Positions 19,294-56,100 of a stretch of DNA of 64,000 nt are shown in pieces (position 1 is the first letter of the stretch; every line of letters begins with the position of its first letter). This DNA comes from Zygnema circumcarinatum SAG 698-1b (Eukaryota; Plantae; Zygnematophyceae), in assembly GCA_037447605.1 (NCBI GenBank), contig CM074805.1, positions 4,125,361 to 4,189,360 of the forward strand. Direction: 5' to 3'. The translations under genes were made by a program, and so were the position numbers. Below the pieces are notes generated by a model that was not told the origin of the DNA, ran no database searches, and worked only from the letters and a program-made list of their open reading frames with translations.

Positions 19294-22200
19294 TCATCCA
19301 GCAGCTTCCTCAGCAATGGGATCCTTCGCTTCGTCGTTGTGGGTAGTACTCCCCTTGGTGGGCCCCACAGAGGAGCTGGCTTCTGCTCCGCTGCCATTTG
19401 GCTTCCCAGCCGCTTCATTTTGAGGGGCTGCCTCCGCCTTGCTACTGCTGCCGGGCATGTTAGCTCTACTCCGAAGCGCCTCAAAGGCGCTCATACTCTC
19501 CTGATCAAAGCCTCCTGCAAACTGCAACACGAATGCAAAAGGATCGAAATGATGAGATAAGGGAAGGAGTGCACCTATCGTGTGCGAGAGGACTTGGAAA
19601 GACGGGGACTATTCGTCAAGTGTGACCGAATGAGGTATGGAGAGGAGGAAATCATGCTAGTGCCGAGTCTCCGGCAGCTCACCTGGTGGACTCTAAACGC
19701 AAAGCGCACGCCTTGCAGCAACAGGAATTCACGGAGAGGCTCAGTCTCCTGCTGCTTGCCCAGCTTGTCCAGCTCTTCTGTCACACACTTCATATAGCGC
19801 CGAGCAAGCTTTACCGAGTTCTCCTTGATCTGAAGCATGGAAAGCATGCAACCTCAGGATCCGAACATCAAAAAAATAAAAAAAAGGCAACAAGCTGATT
19901 TCCAGATTACGACAGTTCCCAGTAGAGCTAAGACTGATTAGAAATACATGTTCTGATTGTTACTTTGACAGTGAGGTTTTCCTTCCACGGGCTCCCCTGA
20001 AACCCTTAAGAAAATCAATTGTCCTCCACATGCTTCGTTTCTTTTCGGTATACTATGGTTAGTTGATGTGCACCTTGCCAACGAGGCCAGCATCGGTCAT
20101 CCACTGTGTTGGAAGTTTCAATTCTCTGCAGCGAACCATGGCGGTATCTCTATTGCGAAGAAGCGCCATGATGTTCTGCTCCGCCCTGGAGACATCACAT
20201 ACAAGACACGACCCATTAGTTATGGCTGCCACTTCAACATGGAATAAAGTCAAAGTCAAATCCTGGCCCTCTCAATGGTGGAGATTTCGAAGCAAATGCC
20301 GTAAAGAGTTTCACTACGCAAGGCCAAGCCAAATTTTGGAATGCAAGTGGTCATGGAGACGAAAGATAAAGTACCCTTCCCACATGTACGAACACAACAA
20401 TCTCCAACTTATTCAGAAATGTCAAATAGACGATTGTTTTTCAGGGGAAGGAAGAGGGTTTCCACACCCAGAGACGGCTGCTGTTGCGGCTTATTTTATA
20501 TGGAATAAATCCACAGTTACACTCCCAGCACTATGATGCAATTCTGAGCTAGTGAGAACCTAAATACACAAAAAGGCTTCAATGTTTGTAAATTCCATAA
20601 AACATTACACATGCTGAATAGATGACGTTTAGATCACGGAATTACGAAACTCCAGCAATACACGACGAGCATCAGATTTAAAGCAGACTCGTCTCTTCAT
20701 GCAACATTGCATCCGTGGCGCATAACGTCATTCGTTCTCTGATGAATAACCCCTCTTACACAGAACATTACCACAAAAAGTTCGCAGAAAATGACACTAC
20801 CAAAGGTGGACAAATGGCTCACTTTTCCAACATAGCCTGCATTTGTTTGAGGGCCGAGTCCAATGGTACTTGTGGATCATCCTCCCCACAGTCTCTGACT
20901 TCCTGCTCAAGGCGTTGGAGGTCAAGGTATTCAAACGCTGCTTCTCGCATGGCGTCTGCTTTAGCATCCGGCCAGTCAAAGTGTTTCAGTACTGCACGTT
21001 CATCGACCTGGTTCAAACAAAACAAAGAACCCCGCACCACTTTCCCATGAGAGCAGCGATGGTTCACCAACACATCTAATAGAAGATCTGAATAATGGAA
21101 GAAATTTGTCGCTCCAAAAACAACTGTCTTCTCAATCTTACAAAAGTCACTACGGCTTGGCTGTGTGGTTCAACTGGAAATGCGGGTAGTTAACGCCATT
21201 AGCAAGAAGGTCGTTGTAGAGAACATAGAGGAGGCATTGAACGGTAATGGGGCATCCATACGAGCACTCCCAAAGTACAGCTCTTGGGGGACACACACAG
21301 CTATCACTGAGGTTACCGTAGTCCTAGTGCTATAAGAGTTGCCAGGGCCAGGATGCCCATCACTCACCAGGAAGGAAAGCTCCTCGTCCAGCCAGCTCAC
21401 GAAGGCCACCACATCATTTATATCGGTGTAAGCGGCATCTCTCACAGCCTTCCCCAATGAATTCACAAAATCCCCTTGCGTTTCCACATCGTGCTTGACC
21501 TGATACACAGAAACCACATGTGATTCTCCCCTTCTATGAGAAAGAGCAGCCACTGTACACATACAGTCCTGTCAAGCACACTAGGACTAGTATGTGTACT
21601 ACATACTACTTATACATAAATAGGCAGCAACCAAACGATAATGCGGATAATTGCAACCGATAGAATTGGGCTGGAAGAACTCACGGCCAGCAAGTGGGAA
21701 GATCGATTCTCAATCTCTCCAATCATGTTATTCCGGGCGTCTGAGAAACTTTTCCCACTTGTGCTTTCACCACTTGACACTGTCGTAACACCGTTCTCTT
21801 TCTTCATGAGAGCCTGGTAAAACGACACCAATTCAGGTGCCCTGTGCATTCCACTGCCCCCTTTTCCCTTTCCACCTTTTTTGAAAGGGGGAGGCGGTGG
21901 AGGTGGGGCACCTGGGGGGCCTGGGGGGCCTGGTGGCTTTGGAGGTCCTCCTGCAAGGCGAAGAGGAGGCGGAGGAGGTGGTGGAGGAGGGGGGCCGCTG
22001 CTATTTCCAGCCGCTTTTGGGCCGCTAAGGGGAGGGCCACCAGGGACCGGTCCTGAACTGGGAGGTGGAGGGGGCCTGGCAACCCTCGGTTCCCTTTTCT
22101 CAAACTCTGCAACAGCAGGGGCCTTCTTTGGAACCGCTGGAAGTGCTTTACCCTTACTCTGGTCATCATTCACCACCCTTCTTTCTGTACCGGGTCCTAA

Positions 22201-25200
22201 CATATTCCCCAATAACGGGAACAGTCGCTGAGCATCGGGACCTTTCTTTGATCTTAATGACAATGACGAGCTCTTGGAGGGTCTTTTGCTCCTATCCTGT
22301 GATGGTTCCGGCCTTGACACCTTCGTGTGTGGTTCTGGCCGAGAGACTTTTATCGCAGGCAGCTTCTGCTGCGGTTCTGCGGACGTATGGTTCGCAGCAA
22401 GTACATTCTTATTCTCCACCGATCCATTTCCTTTTTCGACAAGGTTACCTCCGCGTTCAACAGGGTTACCTCCGAGTTCAACAAGGTTACCTCGACTTTC
22501 CACAAGGTTACTTGCTCCTACTTCAATTACCTCATTAACGCCTCTCACTACCTCACTTGCATAATCCGCTATATCACTTGGACCTCCCACTTCCTCAATA
22601 TCAAAGCCAATAACATTGTCAATGCCGATCGCATCAGGCTCTGCACTTGGCTCTTGAGAGGCATCAACAGTTTCACCGTGGCCTACATCAACAGCAGCAC
22701 CTTGACCTACATCAACAGCAGGGCCTTGGCCATCAACTGCATCCTCCAGATGCCTTGACCTGCTCCTTCCCCATCCCCTGAGCTTCCTGAGGAGTTTGGA
22801 ACTCATCTTTTGCCTGTCAAACGATCCCCGACTCGACGTTTCCTCTGATATTGAGAGGCTGTCGTCAGTGTCGAGTGTTGAAGCCGAGCCAGTGGACATT
22901 GTGTCGTCATCACTCAGTGCGTCAGGCTCAGCGAGCTCCGGAGCATGCATAGCCAGCATGGTGGGAGCCACATATGATGACATCAGCTGCTTTGCCAGGT
23001 CCTGCATCCAGACCAGTCCAGACAATGTCCATGATGAGTTGGGGAGCATCATGGCTAAGAGACTCAGCTGAACAAGGCCTAGGAATTACAAGAAAGTCCT
23101 TAAAGTCTTGCTTACAAGTTCTTCACAAACATGTATTTCAAATGATTGGTAGACTATGTGCAGCTAATGTAATATAATCCTTTCCTAGTATCAATACATC
23201 CAATCTTCACAAAATCAACTTGATCTACAACCATAATGAAAAGCAAAACATAAGCCTCTACTGGGGAACGGCTTGCAATAGAACATTTAGTCTTGGATTT
23301 CCGGATTAGCAGAAAACTCCCACCTGCGACCGAGGGCTCAAATCCTTGTTCAGGTCAAGTGCAGTTGCCCTCCCAGGAGCCGCTTTTAAATTGCGCAGCT
23401 CGTAGCGTAGACAAGCGTTCACCCAACGTAGGTACACCATCTCCTCCACCTCCGTAAAACGGCCACTTTGCATGCTCTCCAGTTGGGATACCAAGTCTGC
23501 CACACGCTGCCGCAGAAGGACGGCCTCTGCTTGGAGGGTCCGTACCTCCTGAAACTGCAGCACCCTTCCACAACATTCTCATAGATGCAGGGCAATATCT
23601 GAAGTTCTGGCCAGAGGCCAGCAGTCTCGAGCTTACAGACAGCAAACACAGTGAAGCCTGATGGGCGCGGTGCTTGATCCCAACTTGGCCAGCTAGTAGA
23701 TTGAAAAACGAATTCTCATTTCTACTACCCTTTTCGCAATGGCTTCTTGGAACGGAACCTCGTGAATTTTATGAGCCAACTCATCTGCACTTCTGAGTTT
23801 GCGCTTCCTCTTTTAACATATATTAGCCAATTTGATGAAATGGTAACGAACACCCGGTTGCCAGGCATCCTATGAATTGTGTTATATTTCAAGGCCGCAG
23901 CAAACACCCTTCCACAAATTGTACCAGTTGAAATGGGCACACTCACATCTGAGCCATTAATGCGATCAAGGTGAGCTTGGTATTCGGACAACTGTACGCT
24001 CATCTTCCGCTTTTGCAGCTGAAGATCCTTGAAATTCCGTCGCAACTCCAGAAGCTCAGTCTCAGTTTCTTGAAGCTTCTGCAGCTCCGGCAGCAGACCT
24101 ACTGTCAGTTCACCCACAGCAAGGCTAATGGGCAGGCGGTGAAACGTGGCTCTTGTTATGCGATGCAAATGGGTGACGGGCTCTCATGCAAGTTCCCTGG
24201 GGAGAAAAGCGCCAGAAGCCATAATTTTGTTAATAAGCAAGTTTCGGATCCATGCAACCCTGGAATCTGTTACAGGAATAGGCAGGAAAAGCATTTCTCT
24301 CACCTGCTGGGTCCTTTCATACTCCTCCTCCTGCTCCCTCAGCTTTGCTTCCCGACTAGCTAGCTGTTCTTCTTGTGCTCTCAGCCCTGCTAACTTCTGT
24401 TTGGCCAGCAGGAGCTCTGAACTCGACGATAAATTCCAGACCTGTTTCTGTAGCTCTGCCTCCCTTGCCCGAGCTTCACTGAGGTCATTCTCCACCTTCT
24501 CTAGAACCAGCTTGTTTGCGCGGAGAACCTGCAGTGACCATCACACAACTACCAAACTGCCAAGATTAGCTAGACATACGTCACCACGAGAGTCCTGAGC
24601 CCAACTGATCAAAATTTCAACAAGTCTAATTCGCTTTCGTCTGCTTGATGACAAGGCTGTACATGATAGGTGTGATAAGAGCCTGCTATCTCCCACATCC
24701 ATTCATGCCATATGGATTATCCTATGTCTCTAATCTCTTGAAGATTGCACATAACAAATTTTACAGACATGTCATCTCAGGCACGGCGAGTCCATTTGCT
24801 AACTTTCAAAAAAACTCAACACTAGTCGACAATGCACTTGAACTAGTCAACAGTGTTGATCCCCTGTAATGCTCGCGTAACACAAAACAAGATGGTTTGA
24901 AAATTAGTTCATAAGATAAAACAACAAGCAATCCAAGTCAGAAGTGATGAAGACTACAATAAGCACATACTCTTAAAGTGGAAAAGCTTTAGACATACCT
25001 GTAGCTCCTCGTCCTGTTCGTGTACTCGCCCTCTCAGGTCCCACAGCTCCAAAGTCTCATCACTTGGTGTATTTTCCAGCTCTATGCTCTCGTCCATTTT
25101 AGGATTACTTGCCAGATTACTGTCGTAATCTCGCTCATCTGCCTCCTCAACCTCAAAGAGATCCTCCCCTGACATAAGGCTCTCAAGTTCTGGGAGGAGC

Positions 25201-32689: not shown

Positions 32690-39911
<7,222 letters not shown>

Positions 39912-40916
39912 TGGTTTCCATTTGCAGTGGGCGGCCTCTCATGTCCCTCATTATGTTGTGAATAGCACAGTTGTTGGTTCTAGGCGTACATAGCTCTTTA
40001 GGACTTGTCGACAACTGTACAATCCCTTAGAACTTGTACAAATTGTGCATATTTTCTTTTGCGAACAAAAATGTATATACGATTTTGAGACGGTATTTCT
40101 GCGATTGTAGTAGTCACGAAAAACCGTGATGCCTAGTGCGAATTGCAGACGACTGATTTCTGCGAATTTGGGACTTCATAAGAAGCTGGAACTGTACCGT
40201 AATGGTTTGAGAAGAAAATCAAGTCTTCTACGGACAGCAGAGAGAGAAAAAGAGAGGAACGGGAGAGAGAGAGAGCGAGAGAGAGAGTGGGAAAGAGAGA
40301 GAGTCAGCGAGAGCAAGAGAGGAGGTTTTACTTGCTTTCGTCAATTCAGTTATGCCAATGGAAAATAATTGCTTTTTGGCTGGAAGACTTTCAAACCACT
40401 TTTCATCATCAGAGTGACCCAACTTCGACTCATGCATTTTATTTTGAAACAAAATGGCGAAGTCAAACAAAATAAAAAAAGGTTGAATGAATGGACAGAT
40501 CAACCAATGACAAAAAGATTCTAAGAAGAAAGCAATCGATCGTACGGAGGTCGTACCAATCTCCCACCCCTCTCCTTCCCTGCGCCCTCTTCTGTTTCAG
40601 TTCCTGTAACTACAGAAGGTCGACTAACCGAATTGACAACTGTACATGGAGACTCTCCATGCAGAGAAGCTCTCTTATCTGGTCACGAATTTGAGAGCCT
40701 GCTTCCCTAAAAGGTCCTCTTAACTTTCAAAAAGAAGCAGCCAGCCTCACAAACAACGCTTGGACTGAACTGCAATCGCATGTAACTTCAGAACCACCGA
40801 ATGTGTGCTCTCCTTCCACTGCCTTCACATCTCCAAGTTTGACGTTTTTTTCGTCTCGGGCCAAACTTCTACAATGCAGGATTGTAGAAGACAAACAATA
40901 AAAAATATTTTATAAC

Positions 40917-42753
40917 TCAACTCGCGGTCGTCGTCCTCCTTCTCTTGGTGGCTTTGAGCCCCCCCATCGTCCCCCCTCCTGCCGCACCCTCCTCCGCCGC
41001 TGCACTGTTCTGCAGCTGCGCCTTCACTTCCTCCAAGTGATCAACTTCATCGGAAAGTTCCGATGTCTTCCTCGTCAAATTCACAATGGCGTCATGCATC
41101 ACCTCCTCGCCGTCTTCCATCTTCGCAATTTGATCCAACAGCTCCTTCCTCTCACGAAGCAAAACTGCAAGCTCGTTCTTCTCTTCGATCGCTTTCAAGA
41201 GGGCCTGTCAGGACGTGCCATATCACATCACTCCAGTCAATCTCAAGCAAAGACCTCAAAACAATTTGTACAACTTGAACCGTAACAGAGGAGGAGAAAG
41301 TGCAGTAAGGATTGCGAAAAGAGCAGATTGAAAGGTCAGATTGTTATGTGTAAGGAAACAAAGAATCCAAAACAAAACTCACTGAGGATCGATGTCATTT
41401 GAAACCAACAGCCTGCAAACTCTAGTGCTTATTTCCTGCGTTTCCTTGAAGCAGCTGCGAGTCCCATCATGAAGCTCACCTTGTTGGACTCCGCCTCCAC
41501 CCTCTCGAGCTTCCTCGCCTCCTCCTCCATCGCCGCCTTCATCTTGGTCGCTTCTGATAAGCGCCCTTCCGCCGCTGCATGGGTCTGCTGTGCGGCCCGC
41601 CACGTGCCCTCCACAAAGGCCCTGTTCCCCTCCTCGACCGCCGCCGCCTCCCTCTTCAACTGCTCGACTTCAGAGCGCGCGCAGGCACTCTTGCGAACCC
41701 TCTCCATCTGCACAACGCTTTCATCGTACTCCGCTTCCACCCGCAGCATCTGCTCCGCCTTCATCTCCAACTACAGAAAGAACAGACACAATCAAAAGTA
41801 AAATTTAGCTACAATATCAATTTCAAGTTGATGGATTGAGGCACCATTCCCTTCCACTTCAACGATTTGGATGCTCCCCATCTGCTTCTTTCTGCCCTCG
41901 CTTTCTTCCCGGATGTCTACTGCTAGCTGTATGCAAACAAACACAATAGCTGAACAAAGTGGGAGAGGGAGCGAGGGGAGAGAGGGAAGGAGAGAGGGAG
42001 AGTGGAGGGGAAAGAGACAAAGAACGTGGGAGAGGGAGAAAGAGCGGGTGTTACCTCTTTTTTCAAAGCATCCAGATGCGCTTCAAAAAAGGACTTGTTC
42101 TCCATCTCATAGTACAATCGATCCTCCACTGAGCTCCCATTGCAGTCCATAGGCTCCTCCTCAGCGCAGTTCAAATCGTCCAAAAGTCGCATTGGGGGAA
42201 AAGGATGAATCCATCGCCGCGGCCATTTCGTTCTAAGCGGCGTCGGAAGCTCCTCCGTCATATCTCCCGCCTTCCTCTTTGCAGGGAGACGCTTCTCACC
42301 TTCCCCCGCCTCTCCCTCTTGCCCAATCTCGACTTTCTCCCCTCCGCCCTCCACTTCATCTCTCTCTACCTCCCTCCTCGATTCACTTCCCTCCCTTTCC
42401 CCGTTCTCTCCCTCTCCCTCTCCCTCTCCCTCTCCGGATCCCTCCCACCCTATTTCTGCGGCCGCCATGGCCGCCTTTCCTACCTCCACACGTAGTGGCG
42501 TGGGCGGGAACAGCCCATTCTCCCACTCACTGAGCGCATCTTCAAAATGCTCTTCCTGAGAGAGAGGCTCCCCAGCCGACACTTCCACTCTAGCCTCGTT
42601 CATCATCTCGAAAGCAGCGCTTCTCAATGTCTCCGATTTCTCTTCTTTCCGGAAGCTGAGTCCTCCAAGAAGCCAGCTCCAAGCACGGGCAGAGACTCCT
42701 CCTGCATGAGGAGCAGCGAAGGTGAGGGACTCCTGGAATCTCAAAGTCGCCAT
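40917..42753 (-). CDS. Unrecognised acidic coiled-coil protein, left palindrome copy (4 exons, about 450-460 aa)
   Basis: Mirror image of the right copy with intact ATG, GT-AG junctions and stop. It differs at a few codons (RVEVSAG vs REVVAAG; RKTSEL vs RKRSEL). Confidence 0.75.
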
Positions 42754-42949
42754 GGCTTGGAGCTTTCCAAGAACTTCAAAACCCTAACTGATAGGCTTGG
42801 TTCCACTCGTAACCCTGCCCTACCCCCCTCAGTTTCTCCCAAAGGCTGGAGCGCCAGAGAGAGACTGAGAGAGGAGAAGAGAGTGACCACGAGAGAGTCC
42901 TCACCAGGGTCCTGTCAATAGGCGATCCGCCCTTCCCAGACACGCGGAG

Positions 42950-43232
42950 CTCCAATGAGAACGAGCCACGTGGTAATAACTGTTGGCATGGCGCGTCGTG
43001 ATTGGTTTACGTTCTGTACCTGACACTGCACTTGCGAATCTTTCACATGGATCATGACGACAGTACAGGACTACATGGATCCCCGCCCACGGTGGATTGC
43101 AGATACAGTAGAAAGTGGCACGCGCCACACGCGCGGATTGATTCGCAATCGTGGTCACAGTTTTACCAAACTTACACCAATCGCGGAGCGCCACGATAGC
43201 AGTTCATTCCACGTGGTGCGTTCTTATTGGAT
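42950..43232. promoter_or_regulatory. Candidate shared bidirectional promoter at the palindrome centre with mirrored G-box and CCAAT boxes
   Basis: CCACGTGG at about 42966 and 43209; CCAAT/ATTGG at about 42952, 43001, 43177 and 43226. These are retained in both arms although neighbouring bases differ. Confidence 0.5.
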
Positions 43233-43452
43233 CTCCGCATGTCTGGGAAGGGCGCATCGCCTATTGACAGGACCCCCGTGAGGACTCTCACGTGGTCAAC
43301 CTCCCTCTCGGACCTCTCACGCGCTCTGGTCTCTCTTTCTCTCTCTCTCTGGCGCTCCAGCCTTTGGGAGAAACTGAGGGCGGTAGGGCAGGGTTACGAG
43401 AGGCACCAGGCATATCAGTTAGGGTTTTTAATTTCTTGGAAAGCTCCAAGCC

Positions 43453-45289
43453 ATGGCGACTTTGAGATTCCAGGAGTCCCTCACCTTCGCTGCTCCTCAT
43501 GCAGGAGGAGTCTCTGCCCGTGCTTGGAGCTGGCTTCTTGGAGGACTCAGCTTCCGCAAAGAAGAGAAATCGGAGACATTGAGAAGCGCTGCTTTCGAGA
43601 TGATGAACGAGGCCAGAGAGGTAGTGGCGGCTGGGGAGCCTCTCTCTCAGGAAGAGCATTTTGAAGATGCGCTCAGTGAGTGGGAGAATGGGCTGTTCCC
43701 GCCCACGCCACTACGTGTGGAGGTAGGAAAGGCGGCCATGGCGGCCGCAGAAATAGGGTGGGAGGGATCCGGAGAGGGAGAGGGAGAGGGAGAGGGAGAG
43801 AACGGGGAAAGGGAGGGAAGTGAATCGAGGAGGGAGGTAGAGAGAGATGAAGTGGAGGGCGGAGGGGAGAAAGTCGAGATTGGGCAAGAGGGAGAGGCGG
43901 GGGAAGGTGAGAAGCGTCTCCCTGCAAAGAGGAAGGCGGGAGATATGACGGAGGAGCTTCCGACGCCGCTTAGAACGAAATGGCCGCGGCGATGGATTCA
44001 TCCTTTTCCCCCAATGCGACTTTTGGACGATTTGAACTGCGCTGAGGAGGAGCCTATGGACTGCAATGGGAGCTCAGTGGAGGATCGATTGTACTATGAG
44101 ATGGAGAACAAGTCCTTTTTTGAAGCGCATCTGGATGCTTTGAAAAAAGAGGTAACACCCGCTCTTTCTCCCTCTCCCACGTTCTTTGTCTCTTTCCCCT
44201 CCACTCTCCCTCTCTCCTTCCCTCTCTCCCCTCGCTCCCTCTCCCACTTTGTTCAGCTATTGTGTTTGTTTGCATACAGCTAGCAGTAGACATCCGGGAA
44301 GAAAGCGAGGGCAGAAAGAAGCAGATGGGGAGCATCCAAATCGTTGAAGTGGAAGGGAATGGTGCCTCAATCCATCAACTTGAAATTGATATTGTAGCTA
44401 AATTTTACTTTTGATTGTGTCTGTTCTTTCTGTAGTTGGAGATGAAGGCGGAGCAGATGCTGCGGGTGGAAGCGGAGTACGATGAAAGCGTTGTGCAGAT
44501 GGAGAGGGTTCGCAAGAGTGCCTGCGCGCGCTCTGAAGTCGAGCAGTTGAAGAGGGAGGCGGCGGCGGTCGAGGAGGGGAACAGGGCCTTTGTGGAGGGC
44601 ACGTGGCGGGCCGCACAGCAGACCCATGCAGCGGCGGAAGGGCGCTTATCAGAAGCGACCAAGATGAAGGCGGCGATGGAGGAGGAGGCGAGGAAGCTCG
44701 AGAGGGTGGAGGCGGAGTCCAACAAGGTGAGCTTCATGATGGGACTCGCAGCTGCTTCAAGGAAACGCAGGAAATAAGCACTAGAGTTTGCAGGCTGTTG
44801 GTTTCAAATGACATCGATCCTCAGTGAGTTTTGTTTTGGATTCTTTGTTTCCTTACACATAACAATCTGACCTTTCAATCTGCTCTTTTCGCAATCCTTA
44901 CTGCACTTTCTCCTCCTCTGTTACGGTTCAAGTTGTACAAATTGTTTTGAGGTCTTTGCTTGAGATTGACTGGAGTGATGTGATATGGCACGTCCTGACA
45001 GGCCCTCTTGAAAGCGATCGAAGAGAAGAACGAGCTTGCAGTTTTGCTTCGTGAGAGGAAGGAGCTGTTGGATCAAATTGCGAAGATGGAAGACGGCGAG
45101 GAGGTGATGCATGACGCCATTGTGAATTTGACGAGGAAGAGATCGGAACTTTCCGATGAAGTTGATCACTTGGAGGAAGTGAAGGCGCAGCTGCAGAACA
45201 GTGCAGCGGCGGAGGAGGGTGCGGCAGGAGGGGGGACGATGGGGGGACTCAAAGCCACCAAGAGAAGGAGAACGACGACCGCGAGTTGA
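43453..45289 (+). CDS. Unrecognised acidic coiled-coil protein, right palindrome copy (exons 43453-44151, 44280-44348 or -44393, 44436-44726, 45002-45289)
   Basis: ATG in GCCATGG context; phase-0 GT-AG junctions (GAG|GTAACA, TACAG|CTA, TGTAG|TTG, AAG|GTGAGC, GACAG|GCC); E/K/A-rich heptad-like C-terminal half; basic PAKRKA and KATKRRR motifs. The exon 2 donor is ambiguous. Confidence 0.75.
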
Positions 45290-46519
45290 GTTAAAAAATA
45301 TTTTTTATTGTTTGTCTTCTACAATCCTGCATTGTAGAAGTTTGGCCCGAGACGAAAAAAACGTCAAACTTGGAGATGTGAAGGCAGTGGAAGGAGAGCA
45401 CACATTCGGTGGTTCTGAAGTTACATGCGATTGCAGTTCAGTCCAAGCGTTGTTTGTGAGGCTGGCTGCTTCTTTTTGAAAGTTAAGAGGACCTTTTAGG
45501 GAAGCAGGCTCTCCACTTTGTGACGAGATAAGAGAGCTTCTCTGCAAGGAGAGTCTCCATGTACAGTTGCCAGTTCGGTCATTCGTCCTTCTGTAGATAT
45601 AGGACAGGAAGTCAGTTCGGTTAATCGTCCTCTTGTAGATACAGGAACTGAAACAGAAGAGGGCGCAGGGAAGGAGAGGGGTGGGAGATTGGTACGACCT
45701 CCGTACGATCGATTCCTTTCTTCTTAGAATTTTTTTGTCATTGGTTGATCTGTCCATTCATTCAACCTTTTTTTATTTTGTTTTACTTTGCCATTTTATT
45801 TCAAAATAAAATGCATGTGTCGAAGTTGGGTCAATCTGATTATGAAAAGTTGTTTGTAAGTCTTCCAGCCAAAAAGCAATGATTTTCCATTGGCATAACT
45901 GAATTTACAAAGAAAGTAATACCTCCTCTCTCACTCTGTCTTTGTCTCTCTCTCTCTCTCCCACACTCTCTCTCGCTCTCTCTCTCTCTCCCACACTCTC
46001 TCGCTCCTCTCTCTTACTCTCTGCTGTCCGTAGCAGACTTGATTTTCTTCTCAAATCATTACGGTACATTTCCAGCTACTTATGAAGTCCCAAATTCGCA
46101 GAAAAATATGTCAGGACTCGAACCCAGGACCTGGGCCTCACTGACGGCTCTCCGGATTCCCTACTGCAAGTACGATCTGAATGGCGTCTTGGATGTATCG
46201 CGATATATATAAATCGCGTATGTCTATATCGCGATACGATAGTTGGCGGGTTGGATAGTTGAGGGTGCAGGGTTTTTGAAGGCCTCTCTCCGCCCGCCCT
46301 GGCAGCCTTCTGCTTGCATCCTCTCCCGCTTGCAAGGCCTTGGGAGCGAGAGAGGGAGAGAGAGAGTGAGAGAGAGAGAGAGACATAGGGACGTAAATAG
46401 TGCTTGTGATCATTTGTGTCTTGCCGAGCAAGATTTCGAGAGAAAAATAGAGGGAGAGAGAGGAAGGGGGAGAGAAAGGAAGGGGTAGGGAACGACAAAG
46501 AAGAGGAGAGGGAAAAGAG

Positions 46520-49500
46520 ATGCCGCACTTCTCGGTGCCGGAGCTGGCCGATAATCCGGACGGCTGGGGGCCTACCACGGTGCCTGAGCAGTTCAAGGAC
46601 GTGCCGTACGCGCCCTTCAACAAGGGCGATCGGCTCGGGAGAGCTTCCGACTGGACGGGCCAGGCCTACAAGTATGGCAACCAAGGTAGGGAGCAGAGCG
46701 AGAGGGAGGGAGAGAGAGGGAGAAGGAGAGAGGCTCTCAGGCACGGCCGGAGGAAGGGCCTTGAGCACCGGACTTTGTCTTGTCGATTTTCTTTCTGTGT
46801 GTGATTCGGTAAGTTAGGGATTCTGGTTCAAAATTGAAAAAGCATTCAAGTTTTTGGTTTGATGCTTTGCCGGAGATCATGCTGGATTGAGGAAGGTTAA
46901 TTTTCTTGCGTTTGAAATCTCAGGGCGCTTCGACAGGGAGCGAGGAGTTATAAACGCGGCGTTTAGTTTCTTTCACAATGAAGATGAAGTGAGTCGCCGA
47001 ATTCTTCTTGTCTATATGATTCCTTGCGTGAACATTTTACTAATTTTTTGCAGTTTTTTACTTCGACACTTTTTTTATCAAAATTTTGAAGTGACCGTGT
47101 TGCGCACTGGAAACTTCGCGTATGTAATTGAGTGGATGAGTTTTGACCTAAATTTTGACCCGAATTTGCAGGATTCGTTCCACTTGGTCGACAGCAGGCC
47201 TCCTCCGCGGCCCAAGTATGGAGTGCGTCGCTTTCAACAGGTAAGCCGCTGCTGCCGAGGCTTCAAATAGCTCTGCTAGCTTTTTCTTGAAAATTACATG
47301 GAAGAATCGCAGCTGTCGACCGAGGCATGATACGGATTTTGGAAGATGAGTATTGCATAGGCAGTTATGAGTATGAGCGTTTGAGCATTTTGGCCCCTTT
47401 AACTAGCTTCCTTACCCTGTTGTAATTCGGTTTTTGTATTTTTTTATTCTGAGATATCATCCCTGTTGCAATGTTACATATGTTTTCAGAACCGGTTTCA
47501 GCAGCAGCGGCAGCGTGAAGAGGCGAGGAGGGACGGAGGGAGAGATAGCGGAGCTGGAGCAGACAGAGAGAGGCAGCGGCGGGAACGCATGCAGCAGCAA
47601 AAGAGAGGGCAATGGAATCAGTACTTTGACAATAGAAATGCACCTCGGATTGTCTACAATAGCTCGGTATGTATTCGAACTCACAGCCTTGGACATCCCA
47701 CCACCCTTTTTTCATTTTGTAATCGGCAGATCGTGCCGAAAATTCTTGGCATGATCGTTTGCCCTACCTGTAAGGTTTAAGCTTATCTTTGCTTAACAGT
47801 CTATAGCGAGAGTATTATGAAAGTAAATGAGCAAGTCACGTCATTGTTTTGAGATAATGCAGTTATGTTTGGTGGAATTTCTGTCCACGCTAATGAACTC
47901 GGTTGATCAAACTTGATACATACACTATGTTGCATGAGGCGACTTGTCGATCATCAGCATCCAGAAGACCATGGAGACATGCTTGTTTCTCATTGGCTTC
48001 ACTTTAGAATGTATGAACAGGAATTATGTGAAAACAGGTGACAATCGGCGTGATTTTGGTACTTCTGACTTAAAAAATGCTCAGCGTAGATGCTTGTGAA
48101 CGAGAATTCCATTTTTTCTGTTCTCATCCTGTTCACAAGCTCCTGTACCAAAGAGCATGCGTTGAGACCCTTTGTACCTCCACACTTGAAATTCATTTTC
48201 ATGTTCTTGATGGCCTGTTTGCTTCTCAAATACGTTCCATTTGTGGCTTCGCATGTTTTCATGTACATGGTTCTTCGTGTAAAAGTATCTGACGTTGAAA
48301 TGCTGTCCTTCGTTTACAGGTGGATATCCGGGCAGAGTGGGTGGTGCTGGAGCAGCTTCCTCTCTCTTCCTTTGCTAAGCTCAGCTTTGATGCTGGAGAA
48401 CCGGAGGATATGTAAGTCATTGAATGGCAGAAGAGAACGCAGTTTGGAGAATTTCTTGAACGAGGACAATTGTAGGAGAATCAGTGATCATGTGAGAAGT
48501 GGGCTAGTAAGTTTGGAAGCACGTGAATTATAGGCAGTGTGAAAACTTTTCCAATGGAGGAGCGGGGTGCAATTGAAGGTGTTTTCCGTCCTTAGAGGTT
48601 TGTATGCATTGGTATTACGTTTGTCTATCACAATGAACAGATTATCGGTTTTTTGCTTAGTGCCGTACATTTCAAATACAGAATTGTCGTTATGGTAGTG
48701 GCCGTAGCTCATGTACCCTCAGCCTTTATCCCTTCACGTTTTTATTGCATGGAGTAGTACAATAGGTTAAGCCTGTTTTTTGGCATGAACATACGTTCCC
48801 TCTGCTTCTATTGATGCTTGAAGTGATGCTTTCTGCAATGTGGCAGCACCACCTGTGGAACATTAGAGTATTATGAAAAAGCCTACGACCGTATCACTCC
48901 TAAGGTGCATATTTACACGAAAACCTTTTCTTCCACGAAGAATAAGTCGGATCAAATTCGTGCGGGCAGGTGCTGTCAGGAATGCTGAGTCCGTTAGAGA
49001 CTTCATCATTGTGTTGAGGCGTCGTGCCTTAACGACTGACCGTATCATATGGTTACTTCTTTTCTGCAGATGGAGAGGCCTTTGGAGAGGTTTGAGAACA
49101 GACAGTTTCACAAAGTTACCACCAGTGATGACCCAGTCATCAGGTACAGTCATTAAAGCTGCTCCTACTCCCCTTCTCTCCCTTCCTTCCCTCCCGATTT
49201 CCCCTCCTTCGTCCATATTTCACCTTTCCTTTTCCTCATTTCCTCAATTTTGCGTCTTTCATGTAGTCTGTTTCTCATTTAATCGGCTAAGTTCTGGGAG
49301 CGTTTTGGGTGGGCTTGCAGGCGACTTGCTAGCGAAGATGTGGGCACTGTGTTTGCGACAGATACCATTCTATCAACGCTTATGTGTGCCCCCCGCTCGG
49401 TGTATTCATGGGATATTGTTGTCCAGCGTGTAGGGAATAAACTCTTCTTTGACCAGCGAGACGTTTCTTTTGACCTTCTCACAGTGCATGAGACTGCAGT

Positions 49501-53145: not shown

Positions 53146-56100
53146 ATGCAGGGCAAGAGAGTGAGCGCGGGTCCATACGAGGATGAGAGCGTGCCGAAGT
53201 GGACGGACGACTCGTGCGGATGGTGGTCGCTGGTCGTCATCATCCTCGCGTGCGCGCTATCCGGATTTTTTTTCATGTGGGTGACGGACGGGGGGGGCAG
53301 GGAGGGAGGGATGGTGGGGAGGGAGGAGAGGGAGGGGAGGCGGAAAGGGAAGGAGGGAGGTGGGGAAGGGGGTGAGGGGAGCGTGAGGGAGAAAGGAAAG
53401 GAAAGAAGATGGAGTTGGGGATAGATTCGAGAGGCGGGGAGAAGGAGAGAGGTTAGAGACGGAAGTGGGGAGAGAGGGAAATGGGAGGCAGGGGAACGAT
53501 GGGAGGGAGGGATCATTCTGTAGTAATTGATTGGAGGAATTGGGGATGCATTGGAAGGAGAAAGCCTGTTTCAGTACGGGAAGGGTGGAGGGAGAGTGTG
53601 GGCGTGCTGCTTGAGGTTTCGGTTTGAAGGTTTGGGAAGGGGAGTGGCTGCTTGCGTTACGGGGCCTTCCCTTTGGCGGAACCCTGTCGCCTGCAAATGT
53701 ATTAACTTTGTCCGGTTAGTTTTTGTTATTTTGAGTGGGTGGTTTGATCGTGTAGGAGATAGGGAAGAGTTGAGTAGGAGAGGTAGGACGGGATGGGGAG
53801 GGGAGAAGGGGGAAAGACGGAGTGTAGGAGGGAATGGACGAGGGAGAGGGAGGAGGGAGGGCGAGCGAAATTGAAATCGAGGGGGAGGTGGGCGCAGCAT
53901 CCCGGGCATTGCGAACTTGGTGGAGAAGGTTTTCCTCTTTGCGGGAGTGGCGGTCTGCATGCTGCTCGCTCTCATCTTTCTCATCCTCGTCGAGCGAGTC
54001 GACCCGGGAGTCGTCGCACCTAACATCAACAAAGGTGCCTCGCCCTCTCCCACTCCCTCGCTCTCTCCCTGTGTCTCTCTCCCCTTCTGTCGCTCTCTCC
54101 CTCCCCTGCTCTCTTGCCCCCTCCTCACCCCCTCCCTCTCTCTCATTCTCTCCCCTTTCTCCCTTCCTGTCCTCCTCCCCTCCCTCAAAACTTAGCGGCC
54201 CTCAAGAAGGAGACAATCTTTCACTAGCAGATTCCATCAGCTCAAGATGAAGGGAGTAATCATTCAATTGACTTTAATGGTTCACTCAAGTCCACCCATT
54301 CTTTGCTCCCATTACGCAGATCATCATATAACATCTCCAAAATAATGTGCTTAAATAATTTGCTCCGTTTCTGACCCAATTCCCTTGCTGGTGGCTGCTG
54401 CAGACCCCCTGATTGCTCTGGCGGAGGTGGGCACCATAGCTCCGGATTTAGTGCAGGACGAGAGGGGGCAGTGGGTGAGGAGACGCTTCTCTCCCGAAGG
54501 GCAGACGGAGGCGGTAGAGCGCTACTGCAGCACCTGCCATATATGGAGGCAGCCCAGAACAAGCCACTGCTCTAAGTGCGGCTACTGCATGGAGGTCAGC
54601 GTCTTGCACTTCCTATAAAGTTCTTATTATTTTTATTACTTTTTGTTGATTTGAGTGCAACTGCGGGTATCTACATTGAGATAGGTCATGATTTCAAGTC
54701 CCCCCCATTTTCTTTGTTTTTAAGACGTTTTCTTCTTGTCTCGTTTGGATGCGCTGGACGGAGTTGTGCAGGAGATTGGGGAAAGGGGAGTAAGGTTTTC
54801 TAATTTTGCGTTGACTTCTGGTTGGATGCAGAGATTTGACCACCACTGCGGAGCAGTTGGAACTTGCATCGCGAAGAAGAATCACCGCTTCTTTGTGGCG
54901 TTCCTGTTTTTCTCCTCCATGGTAAGATAATTCCTCCGACCCTCTTCAATTCCAGAACGCATGCCAAGCGGCCCCTCTCTCTCTCTCTCTCTCCTACTTA
55001 TCTCGCCTGATTGGTTATGACTCGATTGCAGGGGGCTGCGATGCTCTTAGTTGCATGCATCCTTCGCTTGGAGGAGGACAACTGGGGCCAGTGAGTGAAC
55101 TCTCCCTCTCTCTCTTTCTCTTTTTCGATGCTTGAACAAGCAAATGAGGCATCATCCCTTAGTTCCACTGTTAGAAAACATAACGGAATGCATAATGGCG
55201 AAAGGTAATGGAAATCAATACGGTGACTTGTCTGAGAACTTTTAGACGAGGAAAAAAGGGTGTGAAGCTTGTTCCTTGATGCTATAGTTAAAAAGAACTG
55301 TAAAATCTTTTCTTGCATGGGACCGTTATTAAACACTTTTGAGGTTCTTGGAAACATTCGCAGGCATCCAGGAGCCACCGCTTGGGAGAACTGGCGCACC
55401 ATTGTCTTAGGCATCCTCGCATTCGTCTACTTTTACATCACCTTCTTGTTCTTCTTTGCCATACTCCACTGTGCCATTCTTGTTTGCGGTACGTGCTGAC
55501 ACTTTAAAATAATAACGACTACTACTAAGAAAATGATGAGGACTGAACAATACGGCAAACGCTGAATCGATGCTTGACGCTCTTTATGCTTCAGGAGTTA
55601 CGTTGCTCAGAGCATGCGTATGCGCATGTACACAGACCCCTCACCAGCAACCCTAAGGCCGACCTGTTTCCAAGATTGCCATACTAACCCAAACGATCTC
55701 CTGTTTGCGATCCTGCCTTAGCCTTGCTTACCCTGACCCTAATCCTATCCCTATCCCTAACCCTAACCCTTACCCTACCCCTTACCCTACCCCTTACCCC
55801 TTCCTTACCCCTTACCCCTTACCCCTTCCTTACCCCTTACCCCTTACCCCTTCCTTACCCCTTACCCCTTACCCCTTCCTTACCCCTTACCCCTTACCCC
55901 TTACCCCTTACCCCTTACCCCTTACCCCTTACCCCTTACCCCTTACCCCTTACCCCTTACCCCTTACCCCTTACCCCTTACCCCTTACCCCTTACCCCTT
56001 ACCCCTTACCCCTTACCCCTAACCCTAACTCTGCGCCCCCTTCTCCGTATCCCTCCCAGACTTCACCACGAAGCAGTACGTGAAGTCGCGGCGCGGCGGC

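Follow-up and report, generated by a model that had tools for sequence, protein, structure and literature searches.

An old inverted duplication of an orphan gene in Zygnema circumcarinatum with signs of arm-to-arm gene conversion

In Diptera, the homogeneity of inverted hsp70 pairs is driven by gene conversion and decays from the coding sequence into indel-rich flanks (PMC3071340). The palindromes of the Y chromosome display identities over 99.9%, with a mean conversion tract of about 2 kb in P6 (PMC3723533), and their arms measure 73-344 kb on average (PMC3403216). In Physcomitrium (Physcomitrella) patens, a passage of one study attributes the similarity of tandem genes, probably, to gene conversion (PMC3045890). 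Concerning the origin of inverted copies, fold-back priming during the repair of double-strand breaks in yeast has been shown to produce inverted duplications (PMC10622511).

Among these systems, inverted hsp70-type pairs under concerted evolution appear to be the closest match to the locus of Zygnema circumcarinatum described here. In both cases two inverted copies lie about a kilobase or less apart, the coding region is homogenised, and the homogeneity falls off into UTRs and indel-rich flanks. Unlike the hsp70 pairs, the Zygnema gene is an orphan, and its conversion is deduced within one haplotype rather than by shared polymorphism. The Zygnema introns are also homogenised, so that selection cannot be the cause. 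With the Y palindromes P1-P8 the locus shares inverted arms, a unique spacer, intact genes and conversion seemingly in kilobase tracts, and its homologue would likewise be missing for much of the time, as the alga is taken to be haploid. However, the Zygnema arms are about 2.9 kb long and 93% identical overall, and their introns display no GC bias. The likeness to gene-bearing palindromes of sex chromosomes drawn in the initial annotation of this DNA held at the level of mechanism, namely putative arm-to-arm conversion, whereas the link to sex chromosomes was not supported: the arms fall outside the size and identity of such palindromes (tens to hundreds of kb, >99.9%), and no sign of a sex-limited region was found at the locus, where partly homogenised 3-kb arms lie among housekeeping genes. 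Moss tandem duplicates are predominantly head-to-head. As for the P. patens tandem genes, neighbouring duplicates are kept similar in a haploid-dominant plant, although the lineage differs. Fold-back priming of the yeast type can yield an inverted copy beside a short spacer, but the yeast products run to a dicentric chromosome, while the embedded 3-kb duplication in Zygnema would require the template to be switched once more, and the spacer retains no seed repeat. Palindromes are not mentioned in the genome paper.

Architecture and setting of the inverted repeat

Self-BLAST of the window (the whole stretch of 64,000 nucleotides that was analysed) revealed one long inverted match at 40157-46104, with 93% identity over 6,048 columns. 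According to self-BLAST and arm-to-arm alignment, the left arm (40157-43040, minus strand) comprises about 2.88 kb and the right arm (43140-46104, plus strand) about 2.97 kb. The innermost anchor common to the arms is a 9-mer (43032-43040 and 43140-43148; shuffle p about 0.01-0.04). Between both promoters it leaves a non-homologous spacer of 99 bp (43041-43139), which is crossed by a DNA contig and whose self-complementarity was not above that of shuffles (p 0.43). Close to the symmetry axis, a 4-bp micro-palindrome at 43087-43095 was judged too weak for a foldback seed, since its position deviates by 1 nt from the innermost anchor and the remaining spacer is unpaired. No homology was found past the outer arm ends (p 0.75).

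The repeat occupies 5.9 kb of the 6.6-kb gap between ETF-QO and eIF3d. The last exon of the former (39828-39912, plus strand; PF05187, E 1e-10) has its stop at 39912, and the first exon of the latter (46520-46685, plus strand; PF05091, E 6e-16) starts at 46520. A search for target-site duplications of 4-12 nt within 6 nt of either repeat end found none, and neither a transposase-like ORF nor a transposase family was found in the arms. The initial annotation had claimed an inverted repeat with exactly these ends, a spacer of about 100 bp, a position between the housekeeping genes ETFQO and eIF3d, and the absence of a transposase and of a target-site duplication, and all of these were confirmed.

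Other features were recorded near the repeat and elsewhere in the window. The assembly contains an N gap of ten bases at 35657-35666, 4.5 kb left of the palindrome, and a near-pure CT microsatellite of ~660 bp (38428-39088), whose length is possibly an assembly estimate, lies inside an ETF-QO intron. A perfect RNA polymerase III B-box (46114-46124, minus strand) abuts the right end of the palindrome, with a five-T run 7 nt on. This motif occurred once in the window versus 0.15 expected, tRNA and Rfam searches gave no matches, and the B-box is possibly a SINE or tRNA-derived remnant. A small AT-rich inverted repeat (46195-46237; 44 nt, 82%) is located upstream of eIF3d. At 55720-56031 an interstitial telomere-like array with the 7-nt unit CCCCTTA grades into CCCTAA-type units. 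A large exon of CHUP1 (chloroplast positioning) at 21610-23052 on the minus strand carries a 21-nt repeat insert at 22435-22511, and its best relatives are land-plant CHUP1.

The orphan gene and its further copies

Contigs of two DNA runs (X3 and X6, from separate 2019 studies) and of two RNA runs with spliced joints (X7 and X10) were aligned to 40131-46130, and 342 letters of simple repeats were skipped. Both arms hold an intact, outward-reading ORF of 425 codons in three coding exons. A complete gene of four exons per arm had been annotated before; it proved intact and outward-reading, but the RNA joints give three coding exons, and a fourth was not seen in the RNA contigs, which a minor extra exon inside intron 1 could escape. 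In the right copy (plus strand), coding exon 1 (43453-44151, 233 codons), exon 2 (44436-44726, 97 codons) and exon 3 (45002-45289, 95 codons and the stop) are separated by intron 1 (44152-44435, 284 nt) and intron 2 (44727-45001, 275 nt). Both introns are GT-AG, with joints in X7 and X10. In the left copy (minus strand), ORF comparison placed coding exon 1 at 42055-42753, and RNA contigs together with ORF comparison placed exon 2 at 41480-41770 and exon 3 with the stop at 40917-41204. The promoter and 5' UTR span 43140-43452 on the right (plus strand) and 42754-43040 on the left (minus strand), and a CCAAT box (43177 and 43001), a G-box (43210 and 42967) and a telo-box (43420 and 42779) are retained in them at mirror positions. 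The left and right proteins differ at four residues, and four more codon changes are silent.

The part encoded by exon 1 is acidic, of low complexity and mostly disordered, and its structure model was poor (pLDDT 44). Exon 2 was modelled as one continuous alpha-helix of 94 residues (H3-96, pLDDT 95). Exon 3 is coiled-coil-like, and its Pfam search returned only sub-threshold coiled-coil families; heptad periodicity was weak. Basic NLS-like patches were seen by eye at codons 155-161 and at the C-terminus encoded by exon 3. These features weakly suggested that the product is probably a nuclear protein with an acidic disordered part and a long-helix rod, acting as a scaffold. Homologues of exon 1 were found neither in a 5.8-billion word search, nor by phmmer on 1.84 billion representatives, nor in Atlas. 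For exon 2, Atlas gave just weak generic helical matches, and viral and metagenome contigs gave nothing. The searches were run per exon, and their null results carry no information on relatives of other lengths. The gene is an orphan.

Additional members of this small family were detected in the contigs. In all four runs a 255-nt loose end at 42264 continued exon 1 in frame with other sequence, and loose ends at 42794 and 45569 corresponded to diverged versions of the 5' and 3' UTR. Exon 2 was covered by contigs with up to 9 other letters, one of which was spliced at intron 2 in RNA, and the listed variant letters altered 14 codons, 6 of them silently. These variant contigs indicated at least one close expressed paralogue outside the window, and by depth perhaps two to five, so the pair is not the closed two-copy unit that had been proposed. 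It was considered unlikely that the locus exemplifies a genome-wide habit, in which many genes of a compact haploid alga would exist as small head-to-head palindromes serving as mutual repair templates (local pseudo-diploidy) and the orphan family would spread as whole palindromic units.

Uneven identity between the arms

The differences between the arms were distributed unevenly. Per aligned base they reached 12.4% in the promoter and 5' UTR, 0.7% in exon 1, 1.0% in exon 3, 0.4% in the first 224 bp of the 3' UTR and 7.7% in the outer 3' flank (45514-46104 in the right arm, plus strand), and no difference was found in intron 1, exon 2 and intron 2. The longest identical run extended over 1,513 bp (43628-45140, plus strand, mirrored at 41066-42578, minus strand), versus a mean of 159 and a maximum of 385 bp when the 91 differences were placed at random (n = 20,000). 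None of the 559 intron bases differed, while 43-69 differences were expected at flank divergence. The identical core is flanked on both sides by shoulders of ~1% divergence. The outer limits of the identity zones lie near the main indels, which are 24 nt of extra sequence in the right 5' UTR (43299-43332) and an insertion of 42 nt present in the right arm only (45569-45610). The latter resembles a diverged tandem copy of the adjoining sequence, and the paralogue contigs hold a third version of it.

Since the introns are identical, which protein selection cannot explain, sequence appears to have been copied between the arms after the duplication, and the nested zones of 0%, about 1% and 8-12% suggest several conversion events, of which the 1,513-bp tract would be the youngest. 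We infer arm-to-arm gene conversion on an old duplication from one haplotype and from unphased contigs; the homologue searches found no related locus for comparison of the copies. No GC excess was present in the homogenised introns (47% and 43%, versus 37-49% in neighbouring introns), and a footprint of GC-biased conversion was not seen there. The pair belongs to the class of inverted head-to-head duplicates, as adjacent outward paralogues on opposite strands were found together with identity tracts at neutral sites.

With a probability of about 80%, the locus goes back to an old local duplication in inverted orientation, whose three-exon orphan gene was later overwritten repeatedly by arm-to-arm conversion. 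Besides the gene, the promoter and a 3' flank of about 800 bp would have been part of the duplicated unit, which may have originated by template switching during replication or repair, with a fold-back near the promoter and a switch at the outer end. The age of the duplication would be that of the 8-12% flank divergence. Non-crossover conversion between the arms would then have repeatedly overwritten the gene body, with tracts halting near the indel-rich stretches (the 5' UTR and the 42-nt 3' insertion), and it may have been aided by the closeness of the arms and, in a haploid alga, by the missing homologue. Each copy would have its own promoter and a normal mRNA, and the pair would chiefly double the dosage within a small family. 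Of the foldback duplication suggested previously, the genuine local inverted duplication was upheld and an origin by foldback is plausible, although decay has removed its traces at the junctions. Cruciform extrusion requires a nearly perfect centre. Here it is unlikely on general grounds, because the centre is an unrelated 99-bp spacer beside the inner arms, which are the most diverged arm parts (about 82%).

The same pattern could be attributed to a single replacement, either one long conversion or double crossover, or a recent duplication that took its flanks from a diverged member of the family. One 1.5-kb event would account for the core, and, as further paralogues exist, the diverged flanks could derive from another member. 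However, the ~1% shoulders bordering the core left and right call for two or more events that differ in age. Neither arm agrees with the paralogue contigs in exon 2, 5' UTR or 3' UTR, and such a replacement is quite improbable.

Support for the repeat itself was obtained from the DNA contigs. A 537-nt contig found in both X3 and X6 covers 42835-43323 with 0 other letters and runs from the left-specific promoter through the spacer into the right-specific one. In X6 a 1,435-nt contig ends in the left outer arm after beginning 1,260 nt earlier, in X3 a 624-nt contig begins in the right outer arm and continues 453 nt outward, and both runs have pieces running over the ends of 40131-46130. Exon 1 letters were left-type in X6 and right-type in X3. 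Intron contigs had 0 other letters and a depth about twice or more (2.3 to 2.9x) that of the outer single-copy contigs, where contig depth is no copy number and bubble-popping can mask single-letter differences in the core. How centre, core and outer arms follow one another is taken from the assembly and from contigs that each cover a part of it, and either DNA run might be kin to the assembled strain. Four DNA samples contained 0.85-0.87 of the sequence words.

An artefact was weighed against this evidence: short-read polishing could have erased the differences in the core of a genuine pair, or a fold-back chimera could have produced the whole repeat. Racon and Pilon were used to polish the published Zygnema circumcarinatum assembly (PMC11096116), a step by which close repeats can become homogenised, and no contig piece covers the entire stretch. 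Nevertheless, the arm-specific promoters, the spacer, the 3' flanks and both outer junctions were found in DNA contigs of two other studies, the intron borders are without listed loose ends and the introns without variant letters, and flanks diverged by 8-12% are not expected of a chimera. With centre and outer junctions present in independent DNA contigs, it is unlikely that the repeat is a read chimera or that the core sequence is wrong by several percent. The earlier claim of a genuine duplication was thereby supported, and an artefactual origin of the pattern is very unlikely.

Transcription, mobility and significance

A foldback-type or Mutator-like element, carrying the gene in long inverted arms and spreading as a unit, would agree with the further close gene copies with homologous UTRs, with the sharp outer ends, and with a centre contig 1.6-1.8x as deep as the outer single-copy contigs, which might conceal a second centre. 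However, the depth of the centre can be explained by GC bias and gives no copy number, the introns are retained in the arms, and divergence is comparatively high at the outer ends of the arms, higher than in the core, unlike in conserved terminal inverted repeats. The missing transposase and target-site duplication also speak against such an element, although old duplications of this kind can decay. When dispersed copies with the same ends were looked for, paralogue contigs existed and their ends were not visible. The mobile-element explanation is highly improbable.

Both copies appear to be transcribed. A left-specific 3' UTR contig of 144 nt (40579-40722) was present in X7 and X10 RNA. X10 also had a right-specific contig that includes the 42-nt insertion (45540-45669), and the depths of the left and right contigs in X10 were 28 and 34.5; the contigs carry no strand information. 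ETF-QO RNA contigs enter the outer end of the left arm (39912-40330), and a brief overlap of the convergent 3' ends of ETF-QO and the left copy is possible. This entry also weakly hints that the left copy may be the parent. Over the centre (42931-43330), no RNA contigs were found in X7 or X10, although contigs cannot prove absence. The very long hairpin RNA envisaged in the initial annotation received no support, as RNA contig depth is missing over the centre and the genes read away from it. A hairpin or siRNA locus formed by ETF-QO transcription through left arm, spacer and right arm with subsequent fold-back is extremely unlikely: a single strand does fold strongly (-284 kcal/mol for 706 nt, z -38), which is trivial for any inverted repeat, and ETF-QO RNA reaches the left arm, but both RNA runs lack a contig over the centre, spliced sense transcripts are present, and CpG o/e of 0.73-0.76 in the arms versus 0.70 elsewhere does not indicate methylation-driven decay. 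No Rfam match was found.

The pair is real and well supported, but among gene duplicates it is of an ordinary kind. The orphan, putatively rod-like protein is expressed from more than one gene copy and so far has no link to a function. The homogenised introns within diverged flanks provide a textbook separation of conversion from selection, and the finding would gain more weight if a genome-wide count showed converted palindromes to be unusually common in haploid streptophyte algae. The locus could serve as a PCR-sized test for conversion rate, tract length and inversion of the centre, and the alga that carries it is closely related to land plants.
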